A DNA stretch of 41,650 nucleotides, taken from positions 1-41,650 of the forward strand of contig NW_005434409.1 of assembly GCF_000315625.1 (NCBI RefSeq), given 5' to 3'. The notes beneath the pieces were generated by a model. That model ran no database searches. It had not been told where the DNA came from and saw only the letters and a list, made by a program, of their open reading frames with translations. The translations under genes and the position numbers were made by a program. This stretch comes from Guillardia theta CCMP2712 (lineage: Eukaryota; Protista; Cryptophyta). Within the stretch, counting starts at the first letter, position 1; the number at the start of each line of letters is the position of its first letter. Of this stretch, positions 18,291 through 39,849 are shown one piece after another.

Positions 18291-19486
18291 GCTGATGATG
18301 TTCTTACTCTGTTGCTCTTCTCCTTCGCTTCTTCCAATCACAACCAAGAGCGCATGTGCCCTCAACCCACCCTCACCCCCACCAATACCAATCAATCACC
18401 TCACCCCCAAATTTTCCACATATACCCACCCATTTGACTCAGAGGAACGTACCCCCACCCCCTCAAGTCCTCGCATTTAAGTAGGCTGAGGCAGGCTGCT
18501 TCTTGAAACTTTTAGAAACTGGAATTTTAATTCAAATGTTTTTTCAAAAGTATCTATCAAATTTCAGATTTCGTGGGGCCCAAATACAGAAAACAATTTC
18601 TTGGAAGACTACCGGTACTTTAGCCATGTATAGGTGGTCAAGGGTGGGATAGAGGGGGGTGGGTTTGGCCGGTGGTGGCCTGGTACTGCTGGGGTCATTG
18701 AGGGGGTAGGGTAGTCATCGGGTTTAAGAAAAGTGGGGGAGGCTGGCAGCACCTTGCAATACAGGGGTACCATGTGGGTGGGTGAGAGATTTGAGGTGGT
18801 AGGGGGTACTCGTTCACAGAATTGCTGGATAAAGAGGGGGATAATACCAGGTAAAGAGGGGGTACATTTGTACAAGGGGTGTTACAACAGGGGGGTAGGG
18901 GTGATGAAAGTTATTTTTCTCGGATGGAGACGACCCTGTGAAGGTGGGGTAGGGGGTACTTTGACAGATCAGTCGCTTGACGGTCACGATGGCGCCGCAT
19001 GGCGAGGCGGCCGCGCGAAAGACGGAGAGGGGAAGGGGGAGAGAGAGAAGAGGGATCGAAGATGGTGATAGGAAGAGAAGGGAGAGGGTCACAGTGACTT
19101 GCCCGCCGGGAAAAGGGGAGGAGGAGGAAGAGAGCCGGAAGGATTGCAGGCAGGCAGGCAGGCAGGCAGGAGACTCGGCGAAGAAGCAGAATGCACGGTA
19201 AACAAGAAGACCAAGAGGAAGATGAGCAGTCCTGATTTAGAAGAGAATCTGCCCGAGAGAAGCACTTGCAGTCACATGAGGTTTCACTCGTGTGACACTT
19301 GCATCGTGTGTATGTTATGAATGCTGTTGCCATGATTGTTATGACTTCCCAAGGGTACAAGGGCAGCAGCTTGAAGGCTCTTCTCTGAATGTTAACTGAC
19401 CTCCTGTATGATTCCATGATCAGGGAAACCAACGCGAGGGCCCGAGCTGCTACTGGCGAGCAGGGGCTGAGGAGGAGGACGGCATC

Positions 19487-22400
19487 ATGGCGGCTGTGAT
19501 GATGGGGATCCGACATGGTCGTGCCAAGAAGAACGAGGAAAACGACGAGAGTGCCGCCAAGCTGCCGCAAGCGAGCGAGTGCAGCCTCGTGTCGGAGTTG
19601 GGACGACAAGTAGTGAGGTGAAACACTCGCTGCTGTTCCTCTTGGGTTGCTGACAGGGCTCGTCGCTCAGTCCTGTGGGAGTGACGTGGCAGAAGAGGAG
19701 GGTTATGCTCTCCCAGACGCGGATCAACTTCGGCAAGACAGACTCGGACCTGCTGATCGACTTCATCCCCCTCGTCGAGGTCAAGTCGGTAGTGCAGAAT
19801 GTCAGGAAGCGGCACGACGACCAAGGAAGTCTCAAGCAACAAGACCGCGACGGGCGACGTTCGAAGAAGTTCAAGAAGGCTGACATGCAGTTCTCCGACC
19901 AGATCTACTTCGCGGGTGACGACGAGGAGGAGGACGAGGAGGAGGAGCCTAACGTTTTCACCGTCTACACCATCCCCAACGGGCAAAACTCTGGGAGGCC
20001 AACCGTGCTGCGAGCTGGTGACAAGCAGGAGCTGGAAAAGTGGCTGGCTGGGATCGAACAGGCGAAGAAGGTGGCAGAGAGGATTGAGTTGGCGAAGGGA
20101 GACGTGGGGATGTTGGCCCGGGAAAGGAGGTTGGCGCGGGAGCTGTACGAGAGCTTCGGCTTCCAGCTCGCCATCGGCCTCGTCATCCTCTTCTCCTACG
20201 TCGCTTCCCTGGCGAACGCGCAGCTGCTGCCGGAGAGCGGAAGCGACATGGACAGAAATTTCAGGATCATTGAGCTCGCCGTCACAGCCGTCTTCACTCT
20301 GGTGCTGCTTGCTTACTTACCGACCTTGACCCCAGCTGAGCGTGGAGGCAGGAACTGGTCGTTAACCTTTTCGGGCACTGGTTCAACAAATTCTTCCGGG
20401 ACGGATGGAATGTGTTCGGTGAGGAGGCGACGACAAAGCTCTCCTCCTGACCCTCCCCCTGCCCCCCCGCAGATTTTGTTGTCGTCATTCTCGCGCTGGC
20501 TTCGGTCATCTTTGACCAGATCCCTGCGATCAACGTTCTCCGTCTTGTCCGAGTCTTCAAGATGGTCAGACTGTTCAGGTTGTCCTCTCCTTGTCATGTT
20601 GCATTGCTCCTCTTCCTCCTCCCCCTCCTCCTCCTCCTCTCCCCGTCCACCAGCTCATTCCCATCCTCCTGCTTATTCTCTCCATTTCTCCGTCCTCGTC
20701 GCTGACATTCTCAACAGGATGCTCACATCCCTCAGAATGCTTATCAACGCTCTCTCTGCTTCAGGCATCTCCTCCTCCTCCTGCTCCTGCTCCTGCTCCT
20801 CCTCTGCCTGTCCACACAGCCTACCCTTTTCGTCTTCTGCTTCTCTGCCTCATCTCGCACCAGCATCAGTCCCTTTCTCGTTCTGCTTGCCTCTGACTCG
20901 CCGCTAGTCATCCCTGTCCTCAACGCCTTCTGCATCCTATGCCTCGTCACTTCCATTTACGCTGTCCTTGCTACCAACCTATTCGGTGCTACCAGCCCAG
21001 ACTTCTTCGGTAACTTCGGCAGATCCATGTTCACTGTACGTCCCTACCCCTCCCTCCCTCCCCCTCCCTCCCTCCTCCTCCCTCTCCCTCCCTCTCCCTC
21101 CCTCCCTCCCTCCCTCTCTCTCCCTCCCTCCCTCCCTCTCTCTCCCTCCCTCACTCACTCACTCACTCCCTCCCTCCCTCGCTCACTCACTCACTCTCTC
21201 CCTCTCCCTCACAATGTCCTCCTCCATGCCTGATGTCCCTGTTGCAGTTTTTTCAGGTGGGAACCGGCGACGCCTGGGCGTCTATAGTGACTCGATCTCT
21301 GCTCCTCAACGACAAGAATGAGGGATGGGTGAGGGAGGAAGGAGGTGGTGGTGGCAGAATTCTGACAAGTTCCGTTAGATCATGCTGTTCTTCGTGTCCT
21401 ACGTGCTGGTCGTCGGGCTGGTAGGGAGCGATCGGTTCCTCCCCTCCTCTCCTCTCATCCTCCTCGTCAGGTTCTTGTCAACATCGTTGTCGCCGTCCTC
21501 CTCGATGAATTCATCACGACGGTGGAGCGAGAGAAAAGTGAGAAGGCAGCAAGATTGCGGCAAATAGAGCAGGTCCAACCCCTGTTCCTTCCTTCGCTGC
21601 CCAGTCTTCCCGCATTTCTGCATTCTCCTCCTCCTCTTGCCCTCTATTGTCACCATCATTGCCTTCCCCTGCTTCTCTCTTCCTCCTGCCTTCACGACTT
21701 CCTCTGACCAAACAGCAGGAGCGAACTCTCTCTGCATCTCGAGCGGAGGCGCCGCTGGACCCGCTCATTGCTGGTCTCGTCGGCTTCACGTCCGAGCAGG
21801 ATCTCTCCAACAAAATCTCCGCGCTCTATCAGGTGAGCCCGAGGACGCGAACACTCGAGGGAAGGATGCAGCATACAGATAGAGGAAGGGAGAGGAGGGG
21901 GAGCGGGCAGCAGGGGTGTTAGTGGAGTAGCTGATGCGGACGAGCAGCGGCTGGACGTGGATGAGTCAGGGGCGGTAGACCTGCAGGAGCTCAACGTGGG
22001 GCTGAGAAAGCTGAACCTCTCGCGCTCCGTCGCTCTCTCTCCCGACGACTTCGAGCTGATCACCCAAGGTGGAGCCCTGCTGGACGAGGACGGCGAGCTG
22101 GGACCCCTGGGGTTCGAGACCATGATCAGAACTCAGCTGGCGCAGTTTGTGAGGAGGAAGGTGAGCAAGCGCAGGAGGAGGAGGAGGAGGAAGGAGAAAG
22201 AGGGGGGGAAGGAGGAGGGAGACAGAGGGGAGGGAAGGAGGGAGGGGCAGGAAGAGAAGAGAGGAGGAGGGAGGAGGGAATCATTGACTTTGACTAAGGT
22301 GGTGAATGCGATGACGAGCGTGGAGGACGAGAACTTACAGCAGCTTTTCTTCGCCGTCAAGATGCTCATCTCCTTCGTGGATCAGATGGAGAAGAAGGAC

Positions 22401-23612
22401 GTGGGGGCGAGCGCGATGAAGCAGACGAAGACGAGAAAGCAGATCCTCGACAAGCTCTTCAAGTCTAGCATGTGCACCTCCTTTGCCGCATGGAAGAGCG
22501 CGGTCTTCGATCCACAGGAGGAGGAGGAGGAGGAGGAGGAGGAGGCGAAGGAGAAGGGGGAGAAGTCAAAGGACTGCTGCATGAACTTGGAGAGCAAAAT
22601 CTCGAGCATGCAGCAGCAGCTGGACAGGATGGTGGAAGACGAGGAGCAGGTAAAGTCGCAGCTGGGAAAGATTCTGTCGATCCTCGAGAAGGGCGAGCAC
22701 AAACCTGCTCCTCACTCCGTCTTCGTCCTCCCTCCCGAGCCCCGCAGCCTCCCGGTGATCAATCGAGGACAGGGAGGGGAGGGAGGGAGAAGGGAGGGAG
22801 GGAGCGGGGGCAGGAGGGGCTCCAAGGATGTGGAGGTGAGAAAGGGAGCTCGAAGGAACGGGAGGAGCAGGACGGACCTGGGGGATCATCAGACGCAGAT
22901 CATCATGGAGAACGGACACTGCTATTTCTCGGGGAGAAGGAACGTCCCGCTGCCGGAGGAGGAGGCGGGAGAGAGGAGGAGGAGGAAGGACAGCGGCTCT
23001 CAACTCTCGACGCCTCGCGACGGTTGTGGGCGCGTCCTCATCAAGATCCCCTGGACGAGCCTCACCCAGCAGGCCGTGAGCAAGGAACATGCTCGTAGTC
23101 AACCCCAGCTCCTCCCCAGCGACTGCAGGGACTCGTCGGTGTCGCTCCTCCTCCTCGACAGCAAGTTCGTCTTCCTCGAGGCCTTCCAGGGCGTCGCCTC
23201 GGCTGTTCAGGAGACGAGAGTCCAGCTGGGGGCAAGCTGGGAGGAGAGCTGTGCAGCTGCGATGGAGGAGATGGAGTGGAGGCTGATGAGGGAGGAGGAG
23301 GTTGACCTGCAGCAGAACATCTTCGTTGACCTCTCCTCCTCCGATCTCCTCGTCCATCGTCGCTTCTATATCGGCATGTGAGGATCAACCCTGACCTCTT
23401 TCCCCTGCCCCCTTCTCCTCCTCTCCTTCCTTCCCCTCTGAGAGCTTCTCAGGCCCGCGGACTCACGGTTGGCATCGCGCGCGAGGTCAGCGGTGATGGA
23501 GGAGGGGGTGATCCTCGTCGACTCTCACGCCCTCCTCCTCCACGAGTCCACTCGCCTCGCCCTCCTCCGCTCCCTCCTCCTCTTCGACCCCCTCACCCCC
23601 CGACCCTCTTGA
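19487..23612 (+). CDS. Single-domain (6TM) voltage-gated cation channel with N-terminal PH domain and C-terminal EF-hand region (EukCat/BacNav-like); multi-exon, 5' end uncertain
   Basis: PH-like WQKRRVMLSQ...IDFIPLVEV...VLRAGDKQELEKWLAGI. S1-S3 with FFRDGWNVFDFVVV. S4 VLRLVRVFKMVRLFR. Pore FGNFGRSMFT|FFQVGTGDAWASIV. S6 LFFVSYVLVVGLV|LVNIVVAVLLDEF. EF-hand LDVDESGAVDLQEL. The last exon follows a GT-AG intron and stops at 23610-23612. Confidence 0.88.
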
Positions 23613-23675
23613 CCCTCCACCCAGACCACCCCTCCTCCCTCCTCTTCTTCATCTTCACTTTATTAGTTTCTATCG

Positions 23676-24797
23676 TTAAACGTTGAATCCCCACGTGGCT
23701 CGAAGAAGTTCCACGAGCTCCTGCAAGGTAAGTCAGTGAGGACAGCACCACCACCACCACCACCACCACCACCAGCAGCAGCAGCAGGGAGGAGGGAGAG
23801 GGAACCTCGTCGTTAAGTTGGTATCCAGCCACCACATCAGCGTAATAGAGGAGAAGGTCCTTGACCATGACAGCTCCTCTAACCTCCTCCATCGCATCTT
23901 CAAGATCCCTGGGATACTGTCATGGACCTCCTCCTGCTCCTCCACATCCTCCTGCTCCTCCTGCTTCTCCTGCTCCTGCTCCTGCTCTTGCTGCTGCTCC
24001 TGCTCCTGCTCCTCCTCCTCCTCCATTTCTCCGCTCACCACCTTAGGGTGTCGAGCAGCCCGGTATCTGCCCAGCAGCTCCTCCAGCTCGATCGCTCCCG
24101 TGCGGAACGTCGGGTCCTCAAGGGACTCGAAGAGACTGACAACCGCCTAAGAGAAGAGTGAGAAGAAGAGGGAGAGGGAGGGAGGGAGGGAGGGAGACAG
24201 AGAGGGAGAGAGAAGAGGGAGGGAGGGAGGGAGNNNNNNNNNNNNNNNNNNNNNNNNNNNNNNNNNNNNNNNNNNNNNNNNNNNNNNNNNNNNNNNNNNN
24301 NNNNNNNNNNNNNNNNNNNNNNNNNNNNNNNNNGGGTCTCACTTCATGTTGGCGGTGGGTCAGAGGAGGGCGGAGGCTGCGGCTGAGGTCCTCGCACAGC
24401 ACGTGACCTCCGTCCTCGTGTCTGCGAAAGATTTCCTCGAGCTCGTCGGCTCCCATGCTGATCCCGCAGTAGGCCATCACCGTGTTGAGATCCTCCCGGT
24501 CCGGTTGCCTCGTTCCCCTCGAGATGTGCGACATCGCTCGCTCCAGCCCCCGCAGCCCCGACGCTCCTCGACGATACAGCAGCCGCTGCCCACCCGTCAG
24601 ACGCAGCACAGGCAGAGCAGCAGACAAGAAGAGTGAAGAGGAGCAGGAGGAGCAGGAGCAGCAGGAGGAGCAGGAGGAGCAGCAGCAGCAGCAGGAGCAG
24701 CAGCAGCAGCAGCAGAAGGAGCAGCAGCAGCAGCAGCAGGAGCAGCAGCAGCAGGAGCAGGAGCAGCATCAGCAGCAGCAGGAGGGTTACCTGTAGG
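23676..24797 (-). pseudogene. 5'-truncated duplicate of the EFHC-calcyphosine gene (3' exons only)
   Basis: Matches 36091-37207, and homology ends abruptly at about 24797. Confidence 0.85.
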
Positions 24798-24812
24798 TAA
24801 CCCTCGAGACAT

Positions 24813-26471
24813 AGGAGCCTCAAGGCCTGTGTGAGGATAGTGGGACGACGAGCCCGGCGTGCCAGTCAGTAGAGGATCAACAACAGAACTGTGATGACGG
24901 AGGACGGCAGTTCACTTGCGCCGCGCCATGCAGCCTCACAGTGAGGATGGAAGTGAGAGCGGATCTTCACGCATTCCTTGTTGCTGTTCCCTCGCTCTCG
25001 CCGTCACCACCGAAATGAAAATGGCGAGTAGGCGCATTTCTCCTTACACGTCTTTCAACTGCTTGAGAGCCAACGAGCATCGGTATTTGAGCAGACTAGT
25101 CCCGTCAATCATTCTACGTTTTAGTATTTCATTCACCTTCCGGTCTCTATGATGAGGTGTTAAAAATAAAGACGCAACAGCGACATTCTATTGACGCCTG
25201 CGTCTGGTTCGACAAAGAGTCACGTGAGCTTTTTGTTGAGAAGCTCCAGTACGAGACCCATCGTAACATTCAAAGCAGATACGTCGCTCTTCAACTCGGA
25301 TACGTCGCTCTGCAGTTCATTGAACCTCCTGTCCATATCCTCCTTCAGATCTTGCACAGCACCATAAATATTCCTGTACGGAGTGTAAATCAAAACAAAC
25401 GGTATGCTTCCAGGATCCACAAACGACGTCAATTCATGGTGATCAGAGGCCAGAGAGAAGAACCTGCTCAAACATCCACAGACCACCTCAAAGTCCTCTC
25501 TGTTGCCATTCGTCAACAAACCTATCGCCGCAATCTTGGAGTCTTCGCCAATCATCTCACCCTTCAATACATTGTACAGCCGATTGACCTGGAACAGCTT
25601 TTCAAAGATTTTGCCAGGCGCCTCCGTGATTTCAAAGCAGATGTACTCCTCCTTCATGACTTGGAGGTCCCCATAAGAGACTCCATGCTTTCCGAATATC
25701 CTTACATCCTGAGCGGGGTTGACGACCACGTCCTTGAAGATGGTTTGAAGATCGGTGTCCTTGTCAAAGGTCAAGCACATGTCCGCTTGATATTCCGATA
25801 CTGTTGCGGGGTCAATATCTTTAGCTTCCATCCGACTGATCGTCAAAGGATCAATCTGTCTTGTGGCGCACTCTTTGTAATACTCTTCGCACGCGGCGAA
25901 CACCACTTGGTTAAATCTTTCAGCGAATTCTTGAGTGAGAATGCCACTCTCTTCGACCTTACTTCTCGTCTCCTCGTCCGCTGGGAGTTTCTCCCGTCGA
26001 TGAAAGCCTATACTTGCACATCTGCTGAAGATTGAGCCTTCGAAATATGATTGCATGTTCCCCGGGAGCTTGGCGGGAGAATCGATGTACTGGCAGTCAG
26101 CCTTGCCCTGCCGCATGATTCCTGGCCGCGCCAGCATTTGCGGCGAGGTCTGTCTGCGATGAGACCTCAGCTGCAAGCTCTGCCTGTGGTAGCATGTCGA
26201 GAAAGATTGGAAGTAGCTGCACACATGCTCTGGCGAGAACACGAGCACGAGCGCCAGCACGAGCCCTCGTGTTGCAAGCATGTGGGATGATACAACAAAG
26301 TTAGGTCAGAACAAACAATGAATTATTTGGATAATAATACTTCATTGTAAAGAGTATGAGAATATCTGTTTTGGTACTAACTTTCCCTCACATTCGGCAT
26401 TTACAAACACTTATTGCTGATGTACCGTAGCACGACCCCGTACAAAGTGCTGAACTTGGTACTACTTTTCC
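24813..26471. repeat. Cassette copy A (~1.65 kb) carrying the intronless gene, paralogous to 30088-31866
   Basis: Shared from AGGAGCCTCAAGG(C/T)CTGTGTGAGGATA to AGCACGACCCCGTACAAAGTGCTGA...TACTACTTT. Confidence 0.88.
25220..26281 (-). CDS. Intronless 353-aa protein: signal peptide + transit-like peptide, putative PD-(D/E)XK-like domain, C-terminal coiled coil (copy A)
   Basis: Open ORF conserved in a second copy. Hydrophobic leader LVLALVLVFS...VCS-YF followed by an S/R-rich segment. Motifs EYQADM, ICFEITE and KLFQVNR. Heptads LQSDVSELKSDVSAL. The nuclease fold is inference only. Confidence 0.72.
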   Translation of the reverse strand: MLATRGLVLALVLVFSPEHVCSYFQSFSTCYHRQSLQLRSHRRQTSPQMLARPGIMRQGKADCQYIDSPAKLPGNMQSYFEGSIFSRCASIGFHRREKLPADEETRSKVEESGILTQEFAERFNQVVFAACEEYYKECATRQIDPLTISRMEAKDIDPATVSEYQADMCLTFDKDTDLQTIFKDVVVNPAQDVRIFGKHGVSYGDLQVMKEEYICFEITEAPGKIFEKLFQVNRLYNVLKGEMIGEDSKIAAIGLLTNGNREDFEVVCGCLSRFFSLASDHHELTSFVDPGSIPFVLIYTPYRNIYGAVQDLKEDMDRRFNELQSDVSELKSDVSALNVTMGLVLELLNKKLT

Positions 26472-26672
26472 GTTGACGACCAGCCCCTCCCACGCCCAAA
26501 ATTTCATCATGAAGACTGAGAGTCGGCAGTCAATCTGCATGATTGACCCGCATCAGACAGTGTCAGTGACACAACGTTGGTGGCAGGGCAACGATGATGA
26601 TCGGATGCTTCTCAGCATGCCGTAGTACTGTTGCTACTACTGTTGGAGGAGGGAGGGAGGAGAGGGTGGAAG

Positions 26673-27786
26673 GGCTGCATGAACTTGGAGAGCAAAATCT
26701 CGAGCATGCAGCAGCAGCTGGACAGGATGGTGGAAGAGGAGGAGCAGGTAAAGTCGCAGCTGGGAAAGATTCTGTCGATCCTCGAGAAGGGCGAGCACAA
26801 ACCTGCTCCTCACTCCGTCTTCGTCCTCCCTCCCGAGCCCCGCAGCCTCCCGGTGATCAATCGAGGACAGGGAGGGGAGGGAGGGAGAAGGGAGGGAGGG
26901 AGCGGGGGCAGGAGGGGCTCCAAGGATGTGGAGGTGAGAAAGGGAGCTCGAAGGAACGGGAGGAGCAGGACGGANNNNNNNNNNNNNNNNNNNNNNNNNN
27001 NNNNNNNNNNNNNNNNNNNNNNNNNNNNNNNNNNNNNNNNNNNNNNNNNNNNNNNNNNNNNNNNNNNNNNNNNNNNNNNNNNNNNNNNNNNNNNNNNNNN
27101 NNNNNNNNNNNNNNNNNNNNNNNNNNNNNNNNNNNNNNNNNNNNNNNNNNNNNNNNNNNNNNNNNNNNNNNNNNNNNNNNNNNNNNNNNNNNNNNNNNNN
27201 NNNNNNNNNNNNNNCAGCGACTGCAGGCATTCGTGGGTGTCGCTCCTCCTCCTCGACAGCAAGTTCGTCTTCCTCGAGGCCTTCCAGGGCGTCGCCTCGG
27301 CTGTTCAGGAGACGAGAGTCCAGCTGGAGGCAAGCTGGGAGGAGACCTGTGCAGCTGCGATGGAGGAGATGGAGTGGAGGCTGATGAGGGAGGAGGAGGT
27401 TGACCTGCAGCAGAACATCTTCGTTGACCTCTCCTCCTCCGATCTCCTCGTCCATCGTGGCTTCTATATCGGCATGTGAGGATCAACCCTGACCTCTTTC
27501 CCCTGCCCCCTTCTCCTCTTCTCCTTCCTTCCCCTCTGAGAGCTTCTCAGGCCCGCGGACTCACGGTTGGCATCGCGCGCGAGGTCAGCGGTGATGGAGG
27601 AGGGGGTGATCCTCGTCGACTCTCACGCCCTCCTCCTCCACGAGTCCACTCGCCTCGCCCTCCTCCGCTCCCTCCTCCTCTTCGACCCCCTCACCCCCCG
27701 ACCCTCTTGACCCTCCACCCAGACCACCCCTCCTCCCTCCTCTTCTTCATCTTCACTTTATTAGTTTCTATCGTTAAACGTTGAAT
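26673..27786 (+). pseudogene. Third, partial copy of the channel gene 3' region (gap 26975-27214)
   Basis: Matches about 22577-23686 with a few substitutions and lacks all upstream exons. Confidence 0.8.
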
Positions 27787-28244
27787 NNNNNNNNNNNNNN
27801 NNNNNNNNNNNNNNNNNNNNNNNNNNNNNNNNNNNNNNNNNNNNNNNNNNNNNNNNNNNNNNNNNNNNNNNNNNNNNNNNNNNNNNNNNNNNNNNNNNNN
27901 NNNNNNNNNNNNNNNNNNNNNNNNNNNNNNNNNNNNNNNNNNNNNNNNNNNNNNNNNNNNNNNNNNNNNNNNNNNNNNNNNNNNNNNNNNNNNNNNNNNN
28001 NNNNNNNNNNNNNNNNNNNNNNNNNNNNNNNNNNNNNNNNNNNNNNNNNNNNNNNNNNNNNNNNNNNNNNNNNNNNNNNNNNNNNNNNNNNNNNNNNNNN
28101 NNNNNNNNNNNNNNNNNNNNNNNNNNNNNNNNNNNNNNNNNNNNNNNNNNNNNNNNNNNNNNNNNNNNNNNNNNNNNNNNNNNNNNNNNNNNNNNNNNNN
28201 NNNNNNNNNNNNNNNNNNNNNNNNNNNNNNNNNNNNNNNNNNNN

Positions 28245-28926
28245 GGGAGGGAAGGTCTCACTTCATGTTGGCGGTGGGTGAGAGGAGGGCGGAGGCTGCG
28301 GCTGAGGTCCTCGCACAGCACGTGACCTCCGTCCTCGTGTCTGCGAAAGATTTCCTTCGAGCTCGTCGGCTCCCATGCTGATCCCGCAGTAGGCCATCAC
28401 CGTGTTGAGATCCTCCCGGTCCAGTTGCCTCGTTCCCCTCGAGATGTGCGACATCGCTCGCTCCAGCCCCCGCAGCCCCGACGCTCCTCGACGATACAGC
28501 AGCCGCTGCCCACCCGTCAGACGCAGCACAGGCAGAGCAGCAGACAAGAAGAGTGTAAAGGAGCAGGAGGAGCAGGAGCAGCAGCAGCAGCAGCAGGAGC
28601 ATTATCAGGATCAGCAGCAGCAGCAGCAGCAGCAGGGTTACCTGTAGGTTGGCATGTGCGGCTTCGTATCCTCCTCCTTCTCGTCGCGAGCTCGCGGGGT
28701 CAAACGCCTGAGGCTCTCGCTGCTGCACAATCAGAGACGATGAACCTCACTATATTGAGATACCAGTCAACAAGTTCCGTGATACCTTCCTTATGAATTA
28801 CTGTAGCACAGTTGATAAATCACAAGGTGAAACTCTATCCTCTCTCAGCATCGCCTCGTAGTCCACCAGCTGATCGCCAGCTGAGAACCGTCGGCTCAGC
28901 GTGTGCAGCTCGTGGTCGTTCAGCCC
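28245..28926 (-). pseudogene. Partial EFHC-calcyphosine copy with a +1 frameshift (about 28355) and a 112-bp insertion (28729-28840)
   Basis: Matches about 36815-37375. It has TTCCTTCGAG where the intact gene has TTCCTCGAG, and foreign DNA between TGCTGCAC and TCTCTCAG. Confidence 0.82.
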
Positions 28927-29362
28927 AGTGCAGAGCAGCCTGCACTTGGTCCATTAGGTTGTTGGCGTTTACCTTGCGATGCCCGCTGTCTCGTAACTCG
29001 CCCCGTCCCAGTTGATCCTGCCCTTGACTGCTGCGTGACATCCTGCTGACCTCTGCTATTTCCATCCGCTTGGCCATCTTGTTGAAAAGAAACACTCTCT
29101 TCTAATATCAGCAAGGTCTCCCATCTCCTTTGGAGGAAATGGTGGATACGGTAGCTCACTTCTCGGAGGTTGCAAGGACTGGGTTCACTCTCAGCAGGAG
29201 CAGTGGGAGACAATGCCACAAGCTCCGGACAATCTTAGCTTCCTCGCAATGCAGGCCCGGGTAACCGTGCAGCAGGTCTAGCGTAAACTGTAGCGCACTC
29301 TTCCGCTCATCAATCGTCTGGCGGTTGGGGCGTTTAAACGATGGTTGAGTTCCGGACTTAAG
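28927..29362 (-). mobile_element. Possible degenerate fragment of a CRE-like non-LTR retrotransposon ORF (pre-RT region)
   Basis: The minus strand reads ...IVRSLWHCLPLLLLRV (frameshift) EVSYRIHHFLQRRWETLL, resembling the LPxLLL...RxxxF/WxxGxWxxL motif upstream of RT in CRE elements. No RT domain is visible. Confidence 0.35.
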
Positions 29363-29715
29363 TTCATGTGGACCCTGTTGAGCGAAGAGAGGGAGAGCTC
29401 TGTGCCTTTCATGTGGACCTGTTGAGCGAAGAGAGGGAGAGCTCTGTGCCTTTCATGTGGACCTGTTGAGCGAAGAGAGGGAGAGCTCTGTGCCTTTCAT
29501 GTGGACCTGTTGAGCGAAGAGAGGGAGAGCTCTGTGCCTTTCATGTGGACCTGTTGAGCGAAGAGAGGGAGAGCTCTGTGCCTTTCATGTGGACCTGTTG
29601 AGCGAAGAGAGGGAGAGCTCTGTGCCTTTCATGTGGACCTGTTGAGCGAAGAGAGGGAGAGCTCTGTGCCTTTCATGTGGACCTGTTGAGCGAAGAGAGG
29701 GAGAGCTCTGTGCCT
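29363..29715. repeat. Minisatellite, 8 x 44 bp (TTCATGTGGACCTGTTGAGCGAAGAGAGGGAGAGCTCTGTGCCT)
   Basis: Units start at 29363, 29408, 29452, 29496, 29540, 29584, 29628 and 29672. The first unit has one extra C. There are no spacers. Confidence 0.97.
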
Positions 29716-29782
29716 TTCCATGTACCACAGGTCATGTCACTTTGTCTTGTGGACGCAGGTTGTGAAAGAGGCTGCGCGGAAA

Positions 29783-29981
29783 GGGTGTGGGATCGACTGT
29801 AGGCTGATGGTGGGGGTGTGGGATCGAGTGTAGGCTGATGGTGGGGGTATGGGATCGACTGTAGGCTGATGGTGGGGGTGGGGGATCGACTGTAGGCTGA
29901 TGGTGGGGGTGTGGGATCGAGTGTAGGCTGATGGTGGGGGTGTGGGATCGAGTGTAGGCTGATGGTGGGGGTGTGGGATCG
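29783..29981. repeat. G-rich minisatellite, about 6.5 x 31 bp (GGGTGTGGGATCGASTGTAGGCTGATGGTGG)
   Basis: GATC recurs every 31 bp from 29791 to 29977. Confidence 0.95.
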
Positions 29982-30087
29982 CCTGTACAGGTGGCAATGT
30001 CAACCTGCGGAGGAGAAGCTGCAGAGAGAGATTGTCCCCCCAGCATGTCAGGGGCTAGAAGAGTTTCCTGCTGTGACTCCGAGTCAG

Positions 30088-31866
30088 AGGAGCCTCAAGG
30101 TCTGTGTGAGGATANNNNNNNNNNNNNNNNNNNNNNNNNNNNNNNNNNNNNNNNNNNNNNNNNNNNNNNNNNNNNNNNNNNNNNNNNNNNNNNNNNNNNN
30201 NNNNNNNNNNNNNNNNNNNNNNNNNNNNNNNNNNNNNNNNNNNNNNNNNNNNNNNNNNNNNNNNNNNNNNNNNNNNNNNNNNNACCGAAATGAAAATGGC
30301 GAGTAGGCGCATTTCTCCTTACACGTCTTTCAACTGCTTGAGAGCCAACGAGCATCGGTATCTGAGCAGACTAGTCCCGTCAATCATTCTACGTTTTAGT
30401 ATTTCATTCACCTTCCGGTCTCTATGATGAGGTGTTAAAAATAAAGACGCAACAGCGACATTCTGTTGACGCCTCGGATACGTCGCTCTTCAACTCGGAT
30501 ACGTCGCTCTTCAACTCGGTTACGTCGCTCTGCAACGCGGTTACGTTGCTCTGCAGTTCATTGAACCTCGTGTCCACATCCTCCTTCAGTTCATTGAACC
30601 TCGTGTCCACATCCTCCTTCAGTTCATCGAACTTCCTGTCCACATTCTCCTTCAGATCTTGCACAGCACCATAAATATTCCTGTACGGAGTGTAAATCAA
30701 AACAAACGGTATGCTTCCAGGATCCACAAACGACGTCAATTCATGGTGATCAGAGGCCAGAGAGAAGAACCTGCTCAAACATCCACTGACCACCTCAAAG
30801 TCCTCTCTGTTGCCATTCGTCAACAAACCTATCGCCGCAATCTTGGAGTCTTCGCCAATCATCTCACCCTTCAATACATTGTACAGCCGATTGACCTGAA
30901 ACAGCTTTTCAAAGATTTTGCCAGGCGTCTCCGTGATTTCAAAGCAGATGTACTCCTCCTTCATGACTTGGAGGTCCTCATATGAGACTCCATGCTTTCC
31001 GAATATCCTTACATCCTGAGCGGGGTTGACGACCACGTCCTTGAAGATGGTTTGAAGATCGATGTCATTGTCAAAGGTCAAGCACATGTCCGCTTGATAT
31101 TCCGATATTGTAGCGAGGTCAATATCTTTAGTATCATCCATCCGACTGATCTTCAAAGGTTTTTTCTGTCTTGTGGCGCACTCTTTGTAATACTCTTCGC
31201 ACGCGGCGAACACCACTTGGTTAACTCTTTCAGCGTATCCTTTAGTGAGAATGCCACTATCTTTGAGCTTTCTCCTCGTCTCCTCGTCCGCTGGCAGTTT
31301 CTCCCGTCGATGAAAGCCTATACTTGCACATCTGCTGAAGATCGAGCTCTCGAAATTTGATTGCATGTTCCCCGGGAGGTTGGCGGGAGAATCGATGTAG
31401 TAGCAGGTAGCCTTGCCCTGCCGCATGATTCCTGGCCGCGCCAGCATTTGCGGCGAGGTCTGCCTGCGATGAGACCTCTGCTGCAAGCTCTGCCTGTGGT
31501 AGTATGTCGAGAAAGATTGCAAGTAGCTGCACACATGCTCTGGCGAGAACACGAGCACGAGCGCCAGCACGAGCCCTCGTGTTGCAAGCATGTTTCTTTT
31601 TTAAAACATTCTTGTATTGACTGAAAAAGAAAGTCAAACCGGATGGTATTCGATAGAAATGAGCGGCTAAATATATATAGGATGATAGATAGAACAATAC
31701 AAACTATTTGGATGGTAATACTTCAATCATTGTAAAGAGTATGAAAATATCTGTTTTGGTACTAACTTAACTTACATTCGGCATTTACAAACAGTTATTG
31801 CTGAAGTACCGTACTAGCACGACCCCGTACAAAGTGCTGAGCTTGGTACCGTAGTACTACTTTCCC
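30088..31866. repeat. Cassette copy B (gap 30115-30283)
   Basis: Paralog of 24813-26471 with an extra ~85-bp AT-rich segment just upstream of the ATG. Confidence 0.88.
30422..31591 (-). CDS. Intronless 389-aa paralog (copy B) with expanded coiled-coil repeats and an altered C-terminus
   Basis: Colinear with 25220-26281, with extra 11-aa (FNELKEDVDTR) and 7-aa (SDVxELK) repeats. Confidence 0.72.
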   Translation of the reverse strand: MLATRGLVLALVLVFSPEHVCSYLQSFSTYYHRQSLQQRSHRRQTSPQMLARPGIMRQGKATCYYIDSPANLPGNMQSNFESSIFSRCASIGFHRREKLPADEETRRKLKDSGILTKGYAERVNQVVFAACEEYYKECATRQKKPLKISRMDDTKDIDLATISEYQADMCLTFDNDIDLQTIFKDVVVNPAQDVRIFGKHGVSYEDLQVMKEEYICFEITETPGKIFEKLFQVNRLYNVLKGEMIGEDSKIAAIGLLTNGNREDFEVVSGCLSRFFSLASDHHELTSFVDPGSIPFVLIYTPYRNIYGAVQDLKENVDRKFDELKEDVDTRFNELKEDVDTRFNELQSNVTALQSDVTELKSDVSELKSDVSEASTECRCCVFIFNTSS

Positions 31867-32603: not shown

Positions 32604-32982
32604 TGTGGGTAGGTGAGAGATTTGAGGGGGTAGGGGTACTCGTTTACAGAAGTTGCTAGCTAAAGAGGGGGATAATATCAGGTAAAGAGGGGGTACATTT
32701 GTACAAGGGGTGTTACAATAGGGAAAGGGGTGATGGAAGTTATTTTTCTCGGGTGGAGACGACCCTCTGCAGGTGGGGTAGGGGGTACTTTGACAGATCA
32801 GTCGCTTGACGCCGGTCACGATGGCGCCGCATAGCGAGGCGGCCGCGCAAAAGACGGAGAGGGGGGGAGGAGGAGGAGAGGGATCGAAGATGGAGAGGGG
32901 GAAGGAACTTCAAGAAGCCCGAAGAGGGGGGGGGGGGCGAGGAAGAGAGCCGGAAGGATTGCAGGCAGGCAGGCAGGCAGGT

Positions 32983-33057
<75 letters not shown>

Positions 33058-36000
33058 CNNNNNNNNNNNNNNNNNNNNNNNNNNNNNNNNNNNNNNNNNN
33101 NNNNNNNNNNNNNNNNNNNNNNNNNNNNNNNNNNNNNNNNNNNNNNNNNNNNNNNNNNGCAGGCAGGCAGGCAGGCAGGCAGGAGACTCGGCGAAGAAGC
33201 AGGATGCACGGTAAACAAGAAGACCAAGAGGAAGATGAGCAGTCATGAGCAGTCCTGATTTAGAAGAGAATCTGCCCGAGAGAAGCACTTGAGGTTTCAC
33301 TCGTGTGACACTTGCATCGTTTGTATGTTATGGATGCTGTTGCCATGATTGCCATGACTTCCCAAGGGTACAAGGGCAGCAGCTTGAAGACTCTTCTCTG
33401 AATCTTAACTGACCTCCTGCATGATTCGATGATCAGGAAAACCAAAGCAAAGGCCCGAGCTGCTACCGGCGAGCAGGGGCTGCATCATGGCGGCTGTGAT
33501 GATGGGGATCCGACATGGTCATGTTAAGAAGAACGAGGAAAACGACGAGAGCGCCGCCAAGCTGCCGCAAGCGAGCGAGTGCAGCCTCGTGTCGGAGTTG
33601 GGACGACAAGTAGTGAGGTGAATCACTCGCTGCTGTTCCTCTTGCGTTGCTGACAGGCCTCGTCGCTCAGTCCTGTGGGAGTGACGTGGCAGAAGAGGAG
33701 GGTTATGCTCTCCCAGACGCGGATCAACTTCGGCAAGGCAGACACGGACCTGCTGATCGACTTCATCCCCCTCGTCGAGGTCAAGTCGGTAGTGCACAAT
33801 GTCAGGAAGCGGCACGACGACCAAGGGAGTCTCAAGCAACAAGAGCGCGACGGGCGACGTTCGAAGAAGTTGAAGAAGGCTGACATGCAGTTCTCCGACC
33901 AGATCTACTTCGCGGGCGACGACGAGGAGGAGGACGAGGAGGAGGAGCCTAACGTTTTCACCGTCTACACCATCCCCAACGGGCGAAACTCTGGGAGGCC
34001 AACCGTGCTGCGAGCTGGCGACAAGCAGGAGCTGGAAAAGTGGCTGGCTGGGATCGAGCACGCGAAGAAGGTGGCAGAGAGGATTGAGCTGGCGAAGGGA
34101 GACGTGGGGATGTTGGCGCGGGAAAGGAGGTTGGCGCGGGAGCTGTACGAGAGCTTCGGCTTCCAGCTCGCCATCGGCCTCGTCATCTTCTTCTCCTACG
34201 TCGCTTCCCTGGCAAACGCGCAGCTGCTGCCGGAGAGCGGAAGCGACATGGACAGAAACTTCAGGATCATTGAGCTCGCCGTCACAGCCGTCTTCACTCT
34301 GGTGCTGCTCGCTTACTTGCCGACCTTGACCCCAGCTGAGCGTGGAAGCAGGAGCTGGTCGTTAACCTTTTCGGGCACTGGTTCAACAAATTCTTCCGGG
34401 ACGGATGGAATGTGTTCGGTGAGTAGGCGACGACAAAGCTCTCCTCCTGACCCTCTCCCTGCCCCCCCCGCAGATTTTGTTGTCGTCATTCTCGCGCTGG
34501 CTTCGGTCATCTTTGACCAGATCCCTGCGATCAACGTTCTCCGTCTTGTCCGAGTCTTCAAGATGGTCAGACTGTTCAGGTTGTCCACTGCTTGTCATGT
34601 TGCATTGCTCCTCTTCCTCCACCACCTCCTCTTCTCCCCGTCCACCAGCTCATTCCCATGCTCCTGCGTCTTCTCCACATTTCTGAAGTCCAGGACAGTC
34701 GGAGAAGTTCTTCCGCTGCTCGTTCATCAGCAAGGATGAGATCGATGGAAGGAAGCGGTCTATTCAGAACTTACAGCAGCTTATCTTCGCCGTCAAGATG
34801 CTCATCTCGTTCGTGGATCAGATGGAGAAGAAGGACGTGGGAGCGAGCGCGATGAAGCAGACGAAGACGAGAAAGCAGATCCTTGACAAGCTCTTCAAGT
34901 CAAGCATGTGCACCTCCTTTGCCGCATGGAAGAGCGCGGTCTTCGATCCGCAGGAGGAGCAGGAGGAGCAAGAGGAGGCGAAGGAGAAGGAGGAGAAGTC
35001 AAAGAACTGCTGCATGAACTTGGAGAGGAAAATCTCGAGCATGCAGCAGCGACTGGATAGGATGGTGGAAGAGGAGGAGCAGGTGAAGTCGCAGCTGGGA
35101 AAGATTCTGTCGATCCTCGAGAAGGGCGAGCACAAATCTGCTCCTCACTCCGTCTTCGTCCTCCCCCCCGAGCCCCGCAGCCTCCCGGTGATCCATCGAG
35201 GAGAGGGAGGAGAGGGAGGGAGGAGGGAGGGAGGGAGCGGGGGCAGGAGGGGCAGCAAGGACGTGGAGGTGAGAAAGGGAGCTCGAAGGAACGGGAGGAG
35301 CAGGACGGACCTGGGGGATCATCAGACGCAGATCATCATGGAGAACGGACACTGCTATTTCTCGGGGAGAAGGAACGTCCCGCTGCCGGAGGAGGAGGCG
35401 GGAGAGAGGAGGAGGAGGAAGGACAGCAGCTCTCAACTCTCGACGCCTCGCGACGGATGTGGGCGCGTCCTCATCAAGGTCCCCTGGACGAGCCTCGCCC
35501 AGCAGGCCGTGAGCAAGGAACATGCTCGTAGTCAACCCCAGCTCCTCCCCAGCGACTGCAGGGACTCGTCGGTGTCGCTCCTCCTCCTCGACAGCAAGTT
35601 CGTCTTCCTCGAGGCCTTCCAGGGCGTCGCCTCGGCTGTTCAGGAGACGAGAGTCCAGCTGGGGGCAAGCTGGGAGGAGAGCTGTGCAGCTGCGATGGAG
35701 GAGATGGAGTGGAGGCTGATGAGGGAGGAGGAGGTTGACCTGCAGCAGAACATCTTGGTTGACCTCTCCTCCTCCGATCTCCTCGTCCAACGTCGCTTCA
35801 TATCGGCATGTGAGGATCAACCCTGCCCCCTTCTCCTCCTCTCCTTCCTTCCCCTCTGAGAGCTTCTCAGGCCCGCGGACTCACGGTTGGCATCGCGCGC
35901 GAGGTCAGCGGTGATGGAGGAGGGGGTGATCCTCGTCGACTCTCACGCCCTCCTCCTCCACGAGTCCACTCGCCTCGCCCTCCTCCGCTCCCTCCTCCTC

Positions 36001-36387
36001 TTCGACCCCCTCACCCCCCGACCCTCCTGACCCTCCACCCAGACCACCCCTCCTCCCTCTTCTTCATCTTCACTTTATTTGTTTCTATCGTTAAACGTTG
36101 AATCCCCACGTGGCTCGAAGAAGTTCCACGAGCTCCTGCAAGGTAAGTCAGTGAGAGAGGAGAGAGGAGGAGGATCAGAAGAAAGCAGCAGCAGCAGCAG
36201 CAGCAGGGAGGAGGGAGGAGGGAGGAGGGAACCTCGTCGTTAAGTTGGTATCCAGCCACCACATCAGCGTAATAGAGGAGAAGGTCCTTGACCATGACAG
36301 CTCCTCTAACCTCCTCCATCGCATCTTCAAGATCCCTGGGATACTGTCATGGACCTCCTCCTCCTCCTCCTGCTGCTCCTCCTCCTC

Positions 36388-36418
<31 letters not shown>

Positions 36419-37142
36419 ACCTCCTCCACCTCCTCCTCCCTCTCCCCTTACCTCATCGCTTCGCCCTCCGACATTTCTCCGCTCACCACCTTAGGGTGTC
36501 GAGCAGCCCGGTATCTGCCCAGCAGCTCCTCCAGCTCGATCGCTCCCGTGCGGAACGTCGGGTCCTCAAGGGACTCGAAGAGACTGACAACCGCCTAAGA
36601 CAAGAGTGAGAAGAAGAGGGAAGGGAGAGAGGGAGGGAGGGAGACAGAGAGGGAGAGAGAAGAGGGAGCGAGGGAGTGAGAAGAGGGAGCGAGGGAGCGA
36701 GGGAGCGAGAGAGAGGGAGGGAGGGAGGGAGGGAGTGAGGGAGGGAGAGAGGGAGAAGAGGGAAGGGAGAGAGAGAGAAGAGAGACGAGAGACGAGGGAG
36801 GGAGGGAGGGAGGGAGCGAGGGTCTCACTTCATGTTGGCGGTGGGTGAGAGGAGGGCGGAGGCTGCGGCTGAGGTCCTCGCACAGCACGTGACCTCCGTC
36901 CTCGTGTCTGCGAAAGATTTCCTCGAGCTCGTCGGCTCCCATGCTGATCCCGCAGTAGGCCATCACCGTGTTGAGATCCTCCCGGTCCAGTTGCCTCGTT
37001 CCCCTCGAGATGTGCGACATCGCTCGCTCCAGCCCCCGCAGCCCCGACGCTCCTCGACGATACAGCAGCCGCTGCCCACCCGTCAGACGCAGCACAGGCA
37101 GAGCAGCAGACCAGAAGAGTGTAAAGGAGCAGGAGGAGCAGG

Positions 37143-37174
<32 letters not shown>

Positions 37175-37207
37175 CAGCAGCAGCAGCAGCAGCAGGGTTA
37201 CCTGTAG
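32604..37207. repeat. Segmental duplication unit 2, with an expanded (GCAG)n tract at 32961-33181
   Basis: Paralogous to 18773-24797. Confidence 0.9.
33487..36030 (+). pseudogene. Internally deleted channel paralog: PH and S1-S4 kept, S5-pore-S6 and EF-hand lost
   Basis: Sequence equivalent to about 20690-22330 is replaced by an ~80-bp filler (34685-34765). A further 1-nt deletion lies near 35799 (TTCATATC versus TTCTATATC). Confidence 0.8.
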
Positions 37208-39849
37208 GTTGGCATGTGCGGCTTCGTATCCTCCTCCTTCTCGTCGCGAGCTCGCGGGGTCAAACGCCTGAGGCTCTCGCTGCTGCACTTCTCTCAGCAT
37301 CGCCTCGTAGTCCACCAGCTGATCGCCAGCTGAGAACCGTCGGCTCAGCGTGTGCAGCTCGTGGTCGTTCAGCCCCAGACCAGCAGCCGCCATGACGCGC
37401 TTGAACGTTGCAACCTCCAGCTGGCCTCGCCCGACGCGGTCGAGCTGTCGCAGACTGACGTCGAGGGAGGAGGAAGGGGAGGAGGAGGAGATCTTGGCGA
37501 GGACGCGACGGGGGTCGGAGGAGGGGAAGACGTCGCTGTTGTCTTCCATGTACTTGAGCGAGAACTCGTCGGCATCGACGAGCACGAAGGCGCGGGAGTA
37601 GACAAGGACGCGAGCCCCGAGGAAGAGGTCCGCCTCGGAGTAGTAGAGGGAGGAGTGCGGCTTCCTGACCCTGCATCGCTCCATGAACTTGCCGCCAGTC
37701 CTGCCAGAGTTCTTGACGGGAGGCTCGAAGATGGAGAGCTCGTCCGTGTCCAAGAAGTAGGTGACGGTAAAGACCCGCTCGATGTCAAAGCCAACAGCGT
37801 TCTCCAGCTTCGCCACTGCATCCTCGTCATTCCTCATCATCATCATTCTCCTCCATCCTCTACATCATCATCTCCATCATCATCTCCACAATCACCATCA
37901 CCATCACCATCACCATCATCATCATCATCATCTTTCCTCTCCTCCATCTCTCACCGAAGCGGAGCATCTTCCCCTTGTTTTCCAGCAGGCGCGTCACGTT
38001 CCCCTTCGGGGGTTTCGGGTGCAGGGAGAGGCAGTTCTGCCGGCTGTCCTCCTCCTTCCCGAACCCGTTGTGCGGGGGGATGTGGGACGCACTTTTGGGT
38101 CGATCCCTCGAGCGGGGGAGGGCGGAGGAGGGGGCGGAGGAGAGGGTATAGCGGGAGAGGTCGACGCCATGCTGCTGCTTCATGTGGTCTCTCGTCGCCT
38201 CGTCGCAGGAGTCCAGCACCAGCTGCCGTCCGAACACGTTCACCACACCTCCTATCTGCAAGTCCCTCTCCGTGACGTACTTCCTCCCGTCCCCTCCCAT
38301 CATCCCGCTGCTCCCCCCGCCCTTGGGTAGCTTCATGCGCTTCAGCAGCGCGGGGAACGGATCCCTCCCCGAGTTGGGGGTGTTGACCTCAAGCACCTGC
38401 GCCCACCAGTCAGCCACCAGAGTCTAGTCATGCAGGAGAGGATGAAGGGAGCGGCGGCAACAGGAGGAGGAGCAGGAGAAGGAGAAACGAGGACAAGACC
38501 TCGACGGTGTCGTCAGCAAGGAAATAATGAAGCACGAATGGCCTTCGCTCCATCGCCCCGTCGTTGCTTCGATCATTCCAGTGGCAATAAAATCTCAGGA
38601 CCTGCCACGTGGGTCAGTTTGAAGAGGAGCAGGAGGGGATGTTGTTTTCCCACCTTCCTGTCGTTTCGGAGATATTGTGTGATGAGCTGCTTCTTATCCT
38701 GCACCTCAGAGTGTGAGTGGTAGAGAGGGAGAGGGAGAGGGAGAGGGAGAGGGAGAGGGAGGCTACCTGGCATTTTCCGAGCTTGGCTTCGATGTATTCC
38801 GTCATGTCGTTCCTCTGTCTCCCATGATACATGTCCATCTTCACCTCCTTCACTGACGTGCTTGACTTGGCGGAGGAGGGGCGCGAGAATTTTGGGTCTA
38901 CAGGCACCTCCTCCTCGCCCACCGCGTACCCGAGGTCCTCGTAGAACTGCCGCGTCAACTGATCGCACTTGGTGATGCGGAACACGCGCTGGTAGATGCT
39001 CAGGTCGCCGGGCACGCGGATGTCTCGCCACGTCAGCGGGCCCTCCCCTCCTTGCTTCGGGATCTTGTGGCGCTTGAGGAAGGAGCCCTGCAGGAGGCCG
39101 CAGTTTTCTTCCCGCGGCTCGAGGATGCGCATAGTGTCGTCCTCCAAGAAATAGTGCAGAACACATCGCCTCACCCGCGAGCGCTCGAGCGGCGAGTCCT
39201 CGACGGACTCGCGGAAGAAAGCTTCGAAAGTGAGCACCTTGTTGTCCAGCGAGATCCACTTGGGGATCTTGGACAGCGGGAGCACCGACGGCTGCTGTTG
39301 CTTCGCCGAGGCAGGACGAGCCTTTTGGTTCTCCACCGTCTTGGCGAAGCTCGGGGACGCAAGTTGATCTTTAGCCCATGCGGGGATGCTGTCGAACGTG
39401 ACTGGAGCTCGCTGAGCAGGCGCAGAGTGAGGGCGGAACCTGCCAGCAGAGCCTCTGCTGGAGAAAACCTGTCGCTGCTCGTGGAGGCGAGAGACGTTGC
39501 TTGAGACCTCGTTGCCCTCCCTCTCGCTCGCCCTCCTCTCCTCCTCCATCCCGTAGCTCCTCGCTGAGCTTTGATTGAGGCGGCTGGAGGCAGCAGAGGG
39601 AGGACGCGAGCCGATCTGCTGCCCCTGCACAAACCCGTCGAAGTTTGCGATGCCCTTGGCAAAGGAAAGGCCCCGGCCCTTGCGCAGGTTGGAGCCAAGA
39701 GCATCGGTCGGGAAGGGAGCGACGTTGGCGGTTGTGTGGCCGAAGTCTCGGAGGGCGCTGTGACCGCGATCGAAGTTGAGGGTCTGCTGCTTCACAAACG
39801 CAGACCGACGAGGGTCGTAAAAGGACGACCCTATCCCACTCGGAAACAT
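36091..39849 (-). CDS. EFHC1/EFHC2 (RIB72)-like axonemal protein: three DM10 domains, EF-hand region and a calcyphosine-like C-terminus
   Basis: DM10-1 LDNKVLTFEAFFRESV...YFLEDDTM...NCGLLQGSFLKRHKIP. DM10-2 YLRNDRKV...EVNTPNSGRDPFPALLKR...CDEATR, followed by PPHNGFGKEEDS. DM10-3 KMLRFVAKL...YFLDTDELSIFEPPVKNSGRTGGKFMER...DADEFSLKYME. The tail has RRGASGLRGL...LRPPLT and ends ELVELLRATWGFNV-stop. Confidence 0.9.

Follow-up and report, generated by a model that had tools for sequence, protein, structure and literature searches.

A tandem pair of intronless genes in Guillardia theta predicted to encode coiled-coil proteins with a divergent PD-(D/E)XK-like head and a plastid-type leader

Introduction

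The nuclear genome of the cryptophyte Guillardia theta CCMP2712 contains two closely similar genes without introns at the joints of a rearranged duplication on contig NW_005434409.1 (assembly GCF_000315625.1, positions 1 to 41,650; this whole stretch of 41,650 nucleotides (nt) is called the window below). The locus raises the question of what kind of protein the pair encodes, where in the cell this protein goes, and how the pair arose. The reading preferred here, given a probability of roughly 0.5, is that of tandem duplicates whose products carry a bipartite leader, a divergent head of the PD-(D/E)XK (restriction-endonuclease-like) type, and a coiled-coil stalk. The leader would carry the protein co-translationally into the endoplasmic reticulum (ER) and onward into the complex plastid, the coiled coil would make a dimer or trimer, and the head would cleave organellar DNA or RNA as a metal-dependent phosphodiesterase or, failing that, bind it.

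The gene pair and its transcription

The genes, the cassettes that hold them, and the neighbouring triplicated region are as follows (coordinates are those of the window; aa, amino acids).

25220..26281, minus strand: copy 1 gene, single-exon open reading frame (ORF), 353 aa (ORF call, stop included in coordinates)
30422..31591, minus strand: copy 2 gene, single ORF, 389 aa, with additional coiled-coil repeat units (ORF call and alignment to copy 1)
24805-26462: cassette 1, the extent of homology with cassette 2, approximately 1.66 kb (self-BLAST)
30080-31849: cassette 2, approximately 1.77 kb, spanning the assembly gap 30115-30283 (self-BLAST)
18773-24715: segment A of the triplicated region (self-BLAST, 94-99% identity)
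26674-28728: segment B, a partial copy of A (self-BLAST)
32604-37288: segment C, a copy of A (self-BLAST)

The proteins of copies 1 and 2 share 88% identity across 339 aa, with differences mainly in the C-terminal repeats. Self-BLAST gives the order A, cassette 1, B, approximately 1.4 kb with tandem repeats, cassette 2, and C along the window, so that cassette 1 comes after segment A and cassette 2 precedes segment C; the first-pass annotation, which had placed cassettes of approximately 1.7 kb at the junction of a rearranged duplication, was accurate on this layout. It had also described two intronless copies among intron-bearing genes, and this is borne out by RNA contigs that run colinear with the copy 1 ORF, with no intron-like joint inside it, and by other family loci, where gene length equals 3 x (aa + 1) and the spans of annotated neighbours far exceed their coding length.

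Transcription was followed by comparing RNA contigs and reads with the copy 1 region. RNA-type contigs from three independent studies, which supply the transcripts for which the first-pass annotation had called, cover approximately 24850-26300, with zero coverage over 26314-26650; coverage ends approximately 20 nt upstream of the copy 1 ATG (26281). Raw RNA-seq reads are nearly all of one strand and pile up towards the 3' end of the copy 1 gene as it runs on the minus strand. The two genes are young tandem duplicates of a nuclear, intronless, and transcribed G. theta gene.

Within the 3' untranslated region (UTR) of copy 1, 41 nt at 25095-25137 are missing from one low-depth RNA contig in each of two studies; the ends of the missing stretch read CT..AC on the plus strand, that is, GT..AG on the gene strand. 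The stretch could be a 3'-UTR intron of very small size, or the contigs could stem from a paralogue that bears a deletion.

The entire 19-kb stretch holding A, B, and C is a recent, gap-rich segmental amplification. A 24-nt near-perfect palindrome at 24782-24805, GGAGGGTTACC TG TAGGTAACCCTC, marks the exact point where the homology among A, B, and C stops and cassette 1 starts, and segments B and C have its left half only. Two tandem-repeat blocks at 29286-29999, made up of a 44-nt unit (approximately 10 copies) and a 31-nt unit (approximately 8 copies), occupy most of the 1.4 kb between B and cassette 2 and have no equivalent between A and cassette 1.

An expanded, cryptophyte-centred family

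The closest database proteins to the pair come from G. theta CCMP2712 itself. A profile search of 1.84 billion representative sequences gave 47 representatives at E<=1e-3, and the family comprises at least 47 clusters at 50% identity. G. theta paralogues carry consecutive locus tags (GUITHDRAFT_109687-109709, 105176/7, 113956/7, and 122835/6), and further members come from Rhodomonas (one member), from an entry labelled Attheya, and from environmental contigs of anonymous origin, the named members being cryptophytes plus this single diatom-labelled entry. The latter (P0083, labelled as the diatom Attheya sp. CCMP212, MMETSP) is either a true member outside the cryptophytes or the product of culture contamination.

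Two G. theta loci consist of head-to-tail arrays of single-exon family genes, the neighbours of which have introns; one holds four 311-aa copies with a period of approximately 1.95 kb, and the other holds three or four copies of approximately 370 aa with a period of approximately 2.83 kb. Pfam and NCBIfam scans of the window proteins and 60 family members returned coiled-coil noise only, PDB sequence and profile searches with the family returned nothing or coiled-coil noise, and a literature search found no paper that mentions these G. theta genes. The family is unnamed and undescribed, lineage-restricted, tandemly amplified, and centred on cryptophytes, as the first-pass annotation had supposed in calling it undescribed and expanding.

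Predicted fold and putative active site of the head

The globular head corresponds to the following feature.

25346..26104, minus strand: globular core, copy 1 residues 60-312, predicted restriction-endonuclease-like (PD-(D/E)XK) fold (AlphaFold2, structural neighbours, and conservation)

AlphaFold2 supplied with 60 diverse family members gave a model with a predicted local distance difference test score (pLDDT) of 91.2 and a predicted template-modelling score (pTM) of 0.88; the model from 8 close sequences was unusable (pLDDT 36). Foldseek found nothing significant for the head model (best E 0.11), and its weak list consists mostly of Can2, VC1899, SgrAI, BglII, cap-snatching endonucleases, Mus81-Eme1, Nt.BspD6I, and Shedu; R2 retrotransposon endonucleases are also among the weak structural matches. 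In three independent searches, PD-(D/E)XK nucleases make up approximately 80% of the match lists, the matches themselves being weak. Among named Atlas clusters, those of YhcG PDDEXK nucleases come closest, at template-modelling (TM) scores of 0.37-0.44; the ESM Atlas feature search returned no usable match, and a search of a viral structure library returned no significant match to the head model.

Judged from the model, the head is most likely a divergent PD-(D/E)XK fold with a lysine-on-helix variant of the active site. The restriction-endonuclease-like fold put forward in the first-pass annotation is accordingly retained as the best structural reading of a confident model, drawn from lists of weak matches. 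A comparison with prokaryotic DUF3782-type proteins, made at the same time, finds no support; the DUF3782 model is absent from the Pfam scans of the window proteins and 60 family members, and DUF3782 is also not mentioned in the superfamily review.

Conservation was taken over the 60 sequences. Residues are given in core numbering, to which 59 is added to obtain copy 1 protein numbering (in brackets).

G200 (G259): 98% conserved
E158 (E217): 97% conserved
Q172 (Q231): 95% conserved
K169 (K228): 93% conserved
F205 (F264): 90% conserved
P235 (P294): 90% conserved
D108 (D167): 88% conserved
N245: 85% conserved
R175 (R234): 82% conserved
E161 (E220): 75% conserved
E22 (E81): 60% of all 60 sequences, 82% of the 44 having that region
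D133 (D192): 50% conserved

In the model, E22 lies on the first helix, D108 falls where a long strand bulges, D133 opens a short strand, and E158 is on the next long strand, while K169, Q172, and R175 are carried by the helix that follows the E158 strand. The three motifs named in the first-pass annotation are present in copy 1 (EYQAD at residues 163-167, ICFEITE at 214-220, and KLFQVNR at 228-234), but its assignment of ICFEITE as a canonical (E/D)xK motif was inexact, as position 160, the place of the canonical lysine, is T or A across the family and the lysine (K169) stands 11 residues past E158, on the helix. The tyrosine of the supposed QLxxY motif is not conserved in the family.

Glu and Lys are known to migrate within the PD-(D/E)XK superfamily; the lysine of Pa4535, for instance, is located on the second core helix in an arrangement termed 'PD-EXX-K' (PMC3424549). 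The family as modelled would fit this variant, with a near-invariant E158 on a strand and K169 on the next helix. In the proposed mechanism, D167 and E217, possibly together with E81 and D192, would hold the metal, K228 on the following helix would provide the lysine of the 'PD-EXX-K' arrangement, and Q231 and R234 would touch the phosphate.

The leader and its putative destination

Two segments precede the head.

26216..26281, minus strand: signal-peptide-like segment, copy 1 residues 1-22 (hydropathy and composition; covered by one RNA contig)
26108..26215, minus strand: transit-peptide-like segment from Y23, copy 1 residues 23-58 (composition)

The leader reads MLATRGLVLALVLVF SPEHVCS-Y..., where the hyphen before Y marks the putative cleavage site here and in the sites below. 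The first segment has an n-region with R5, an h-region from G6 to F15, and a c-region SPEHVCS with V at -3 and S at -1; the Kyte-Doolittle maximum in a 10-residue window is 3.20, at residues 6-15. The 36 residues from 23 to 58 include 6 K/R, 7 S/T, 6-7 Q, and 0 D/E; the mature part is 17% acidic, and the first acidic residue is residue 62 of copy 1 and residue 67 of copy 2. The leader is conserved in copy 1, copy 2, and the relative P0004, and the first-pass description of a signal peptide ending VCS-Y with a basic, acid-free stretch behind it agrees with this composition.

Under the ASAFind rule, plastid proteins have F, Y, W, or L at +1, and periplastidial proteins are without such a residue (PMC12136025). 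If cleavage takes place at VCS-Y, Y23 would be a +1 residue of the plastid kind. The G. theta reference plastid pre-sequences include ...VAS-F and ...ASA-Y, with Y at +1 in XP_005827680.1; this comparison is qualitative.

An N-terminal signal peptide occurs in a few family members only, and most relatives are without one, including the sister subfamily (52-58% identity), the members of which start MNTTVK and have no hydrophobic segment. A transcript contig of the sister subfamily has an in-frame stop 18 nt upstream of this start. The leader is therefore an addition specific to the window subfamily; the similarity between the transit-peptide-like stretch and the N-terminus of the sister subfamily is not significant (E 0.26). 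The claim of plastid targeting thus stands in part, in that the three-part leader resembles verified G. theta pre-sequences, and it applies to a small subfamily, not to the family.

The leader could instead be secretory only, leaving the protein in the ER or endomembranes, secreting it, or halting it in the periplastidial compartment by the nucleomorph rather than passing it to the stroma. Its strongest feature is indeed the hydrophobic signal peptide, the family members P0008 and P0032 have a signal peptide without an aromatic +1 residue, and most G. theta reference pre-sequences have F rather than Y, and A rather than C or S, around the site. This alternative is considered rather unlikely, because the 36-residue basic, hydroxylated, acid-free stretch comes directly after the signal peptide in a protein with an acidic mature part, because ASAFind allows Y at +1 and one G. 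theta reference protein has it, and because the leader is kept in both copies and in P0004. Judging by the leader, entry of the protein into the secretory pathway is very probable, and its arrival in the plastid is plausible.

A close relative with the same signal peptide and Y leader is encoded on an environmental contig (L002:160-1198). Its frame is broken directly after ...EITEEPGKIF, with two ORFs called, and it is either a pseudogene or the result of an assembly error.

Coiled-coil stalk and C-terminal ends

The C-terminal part of copy 1 is made up of one feature.

25223..25345, minus strand: coiled-coil repeats (11- and 7-residue units) and conserved amphipathic C-terminal tail, copy 1 residues 313-353 (sequence, transcript repeat variation)

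The copy 1 and copy 2 proteins are composed of a leader, a head of approximately 250 residues, a coiled-coil stalk of variable repeat number, and a short amphipathic tail. Across the family, the core is followed by a conserved P-x-F-L-x-Y-T-P-Y-R-N-x-Y element and then by a variable number of coiled-coil repeats, for which the Pfam matches of copy 1 were nothing but noise. Transcript contigs differ by 21- and 33-nt steps, equal to varying counts of the 7- and 11-residue units.

The C-terminal ends also vary, being hydrophobic and tail-anchor-like, SAP-like, or, in the window subfamily and others, a short amphipathic tail. Nine distant members (P0034, P0036, P0037, P0044, P0046, P0072, P0074, P0076, and P0083) have a C-terminal hydrophobic segment of 17-22 residues followed by basic residues, and the sequence of such ends suggests tail-anchored membrane proteins with a nuclease-like head on a coiled-coil stalk. 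Another eight distant members (P0024, P0027-P0029, P0031, P0039, P0041, and P0050) share the SAP-like C-terminal motif MSxxELxxxCxxRGL......LIxLL. Pfam SAP matches four of these eight tails at E 0.04-0.11 with 12.6-14 bits, below the gathering score of 23.9, in all cases on the first half of the model.

Evidence that weighs against the proposed reading

Several points count against the reading of the pair as plastid-directed, nuclease-like duplicates. The strand of the transcripts was deduced from the 3' bias and the coverage edge at the ATG, and the cleavage site VCS-Y was placed by inspection and hydropathy, which also favours a leader that is secretory only. In the head, the putative active-site assignment follows from the order of secondary-structure elements, and the candidate for the catalytic Asp is ambiguous between D108 (88%) and D133 (50%). 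None of the 60 members (0/60) matches any PDDEXK-clan Pfam model, NCBIfam, or PDB, even at E<=10, and when the family profile was compared by hhalign with McrC and Mrr of E. coli, no more than 6-9 columns aligned, all of them trivial. Two further points concern the pair itself, namely, the ratio of non-synonymous to synonymous substitution rates (dN/dS) and the 3' end of copy 2, both of which are described below.

The points on the head bear on a different account, in which it is not a nuclease, being either a divergent alpha/beta domain of similar arrangement or a dead descendant, and the protein is structural or tethering, with a C-terminal anchor. This would agree with the missing profile link to any nuclease family, with the hydrophobic tail-anchor-like C-terminus after the stalk in many relatives (an architecture typical of tethers), and with the conservation of the canonical 'PD' Asp position in only 50% of sequences and the absence of the (D/E)xK lysine from the strand. 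Against it stand the dominance of PD-(D/E)XK nucleases in the three independent match lists, the charged or polar nature of the most conserved residues (D, E, K, Q, and R), which are not those of a hydrophobic core and fit a documented active-site variant, and the SAP-like tails of eight distant members, four of which give sub-threshold SAP matches. A head that is no nuclease is thus possible but doubtful, and a divergent PD-(D/E)XK head is preferred.

Assembly gaps and the 3' end of copy 2

None of the three flagged gaps (0/3) lies inside either ORF. The gap at 30115-30283 (169 N) corresponds to exactly 169 nt of copy 1 (24840-25008) between matching flanks, which align with copy 1 at 24805-24839 and from 25009 on; cassette 2 is colinear through this gap, because the equivalent copy 1 stretch is exactly 169 nt long. 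Similarly, the gap at 26975-27214 (240 N) corresponds to 240 nt that both A (22877-23116) and C (35310-35549) have at constant offsets, and it is colinear. At the gap 27787-28244, C has approximately 708 nt at the equivalent place and A has its own gap, which leaves colinearity there without support.

Copy 2 as assembled is without approximately 85-90 nt of copy 1, including the conserved C-terminal tail ALNVTMGLVLELLNKKL, and in the DNA alignment its ORF ends in 16 residues drawn from sequence that is 3' UTR in copy 1. The 191 nt beyond the break (30284-30474) adjoin the gap and are 99% identical to copy 1, compared with approximately 95% over the rest. A third copy, on the G. theta scaffold JH993255.1 (GUITHDRAFT_122192), has an intact tail and shares 99.45% identity with the gene body of copy 2. 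The tail of the JH993255.1 copy, together with the position of the break beside a gap, indicates that copy 2 as assembled is a duplicate that has been damaged, or else that the assembly is wrong at this place.

At position 25224, 27 of 43 RNA reads have G>T. The last codon then reads Lys in place of Thr, the state found in the JH993255.1 copy, which means that transcripts arise from two or more paralogues. A second paralogue, with its tail intact, is expressed at a similar level.

These observations make it almost an even matter whether copy 2 as assembled is a functional gene, with the odds falling slightly short of the view that it is not. In that view, the loss of 85-90 nt would be a real deletion in a decaying duplicate or a misassembled repeat-rich 3' end, and the abundance of transcripts with the JH993255.1-type last codon and a dN/dS near 1 would agree with it, as would the lost tail, the 191 nt, and the complete third copy. 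Its ORF is nevertheless open for 389 codons, and every family-invariant residue is intact.

Selection and the origin of the pair

Over residues 59-312, dN/dS between copies 1 and 2 is approximately 1.0 (28.5 non-synonymous and 7.5 synonymous differences), rising to 1.15 for residues 59-150 and falling to 0.79 for residues 151-312; family-invariant residues changed between the copies number 0. Such a ratio would suit recent duplicates on which selection is either relaxed or diversifying, and, as far as it is compatible with relaxed constraint, it is one of the points that count against the proposed reading.

The first-pass annotation had considered that the family might be mobile, and a mobile element or a virus could be the source of the cassette, with the gene as its cargo or endonuclease and with an intronless state and lower G+C as foreign traits. 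The genes are indeed intronless in a neighbourhood with introns, the ORFs have a G+C of 0.49-0.50 against 0.566 for the window, an unrelated conserved ORF adjoins two other family arrays, and R2 endonucleases occur in the weak structural list. However, the cassette edges show neither terminal inverted repeats nor target-site duplications nor a poly(A) remnant, and when the cassette is compared with the other family arrays, coding sequence alone is held in common, with no shared non-coding flanks. The viral structure library gave no significant match, no prokaryote- or virus-named relative is found among the matches from 1.84 billion representatives, the L005 array has no G+C offset, and the layout is accounted for by local tandem duplication of segment and cassette. 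A mobile or viral origin is very improbable; local tandem duplication as the mode of expansion accounts for the data, and the idea of mobility is unsupported.

The unrelated ORF encodes 469 aa at L004:1197-2603, just upstream of the L004 array, and has a relative at L005:5617-6051 (37% identity over 145 aa, E 1e-23); no relative was found in the window. By eye, it had seemed similar to a tyrosine recombinase, but it matches no Pfam family and was dropped as evidence of mobility.

Relation to known systems and significance

The PD-(D/E)XK superfamily, and Pa4535 (PDB 1y0k) in particular, is the nearest point of comparison for the head; the model would share with it a Glu on the third core strand and a Lys on the second core helix (PMC3424549), and the family also has a conserved Asp on a preceding strand and often a conserved Glu on the first helix. 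It differs in having no sequence or profile similarity to catalogued families, in an activity that is predicted only, and in three helices inserted at core 44-82 and approximately 40 residues between the Asp and Glu strands. For the leader, the comparison is with the bipartite plastid signals of cryptophytes and diatoms (ASAFAP-type, PMC12136025), which likewise have small residues at -3 and -1, an aromatic +1 residue, and a basic, hydroxylated, acid-free transit peptide, whereas the site of the pair is VCS-Y in place of the commoner ASA-F.

RAP-domain proteins and the Chlamydomonas NCL cluster are expanded families of nucleus-encoded organellar proteins with PD-(D/E)XK-like modules. The G. 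theta family is similar to them in concept, with lineage-specific tandem nuclear genes and organelle-sent products that may act on organellar nucleic acids, and differs in that Pfam scans of the family show no RAP, OPR, or PPR domain and that an organellar-type leader is present in one small subfamily only.

Prokaryotic defence nucleases are also among the closest systems, including Can2, Card1/VC1899, and Cap4 of CRISPR and CBASS, as well as HamA, Shedu SduA, NucC, McrC, and Upx. Because these immune effectors are the nearest structural neighbours, and because the tandem arrays vary in copy number and dN/dS is approximately 1 in the young pair, the family might be viewed as lineage-specific, fast-diversifying surveillance or defence nucleases, the ends of which are swapped for each compartment. 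Tail anchors could then direct members to membranes, SAP-like tails to chromatin, and the bipartite leader to the complex plastid, where the window pair would police plastid or nucleomorph nucleic acids. This extension is improbable on present evidence.

What is new here is the family and its architecture, the fold superfamily being already known. If the fold call fails, what is left is an orphan family that is expressed and restricted to its lineage, of a kind that is ordinary in protists. If fold and targeting are both true, an uncatalogued family would be added to the PD-(D/E)XK superfamily, with an architecture unusual in eukaryotes that joins a nuclease-like head, a variable coiled-coil stalk, and exchangeable localisation modules. 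The pair would also encode a candidate for a nuclease or nucleic-acid binder that the nucleus supplies to the cryptophyte complex plastid, the DNA and RNA metabolism of which is little known, and the window subfamily and its sister, differing mainly by the added leader, would offer a clean natural case of re-targeting to a four-membrane plastid.

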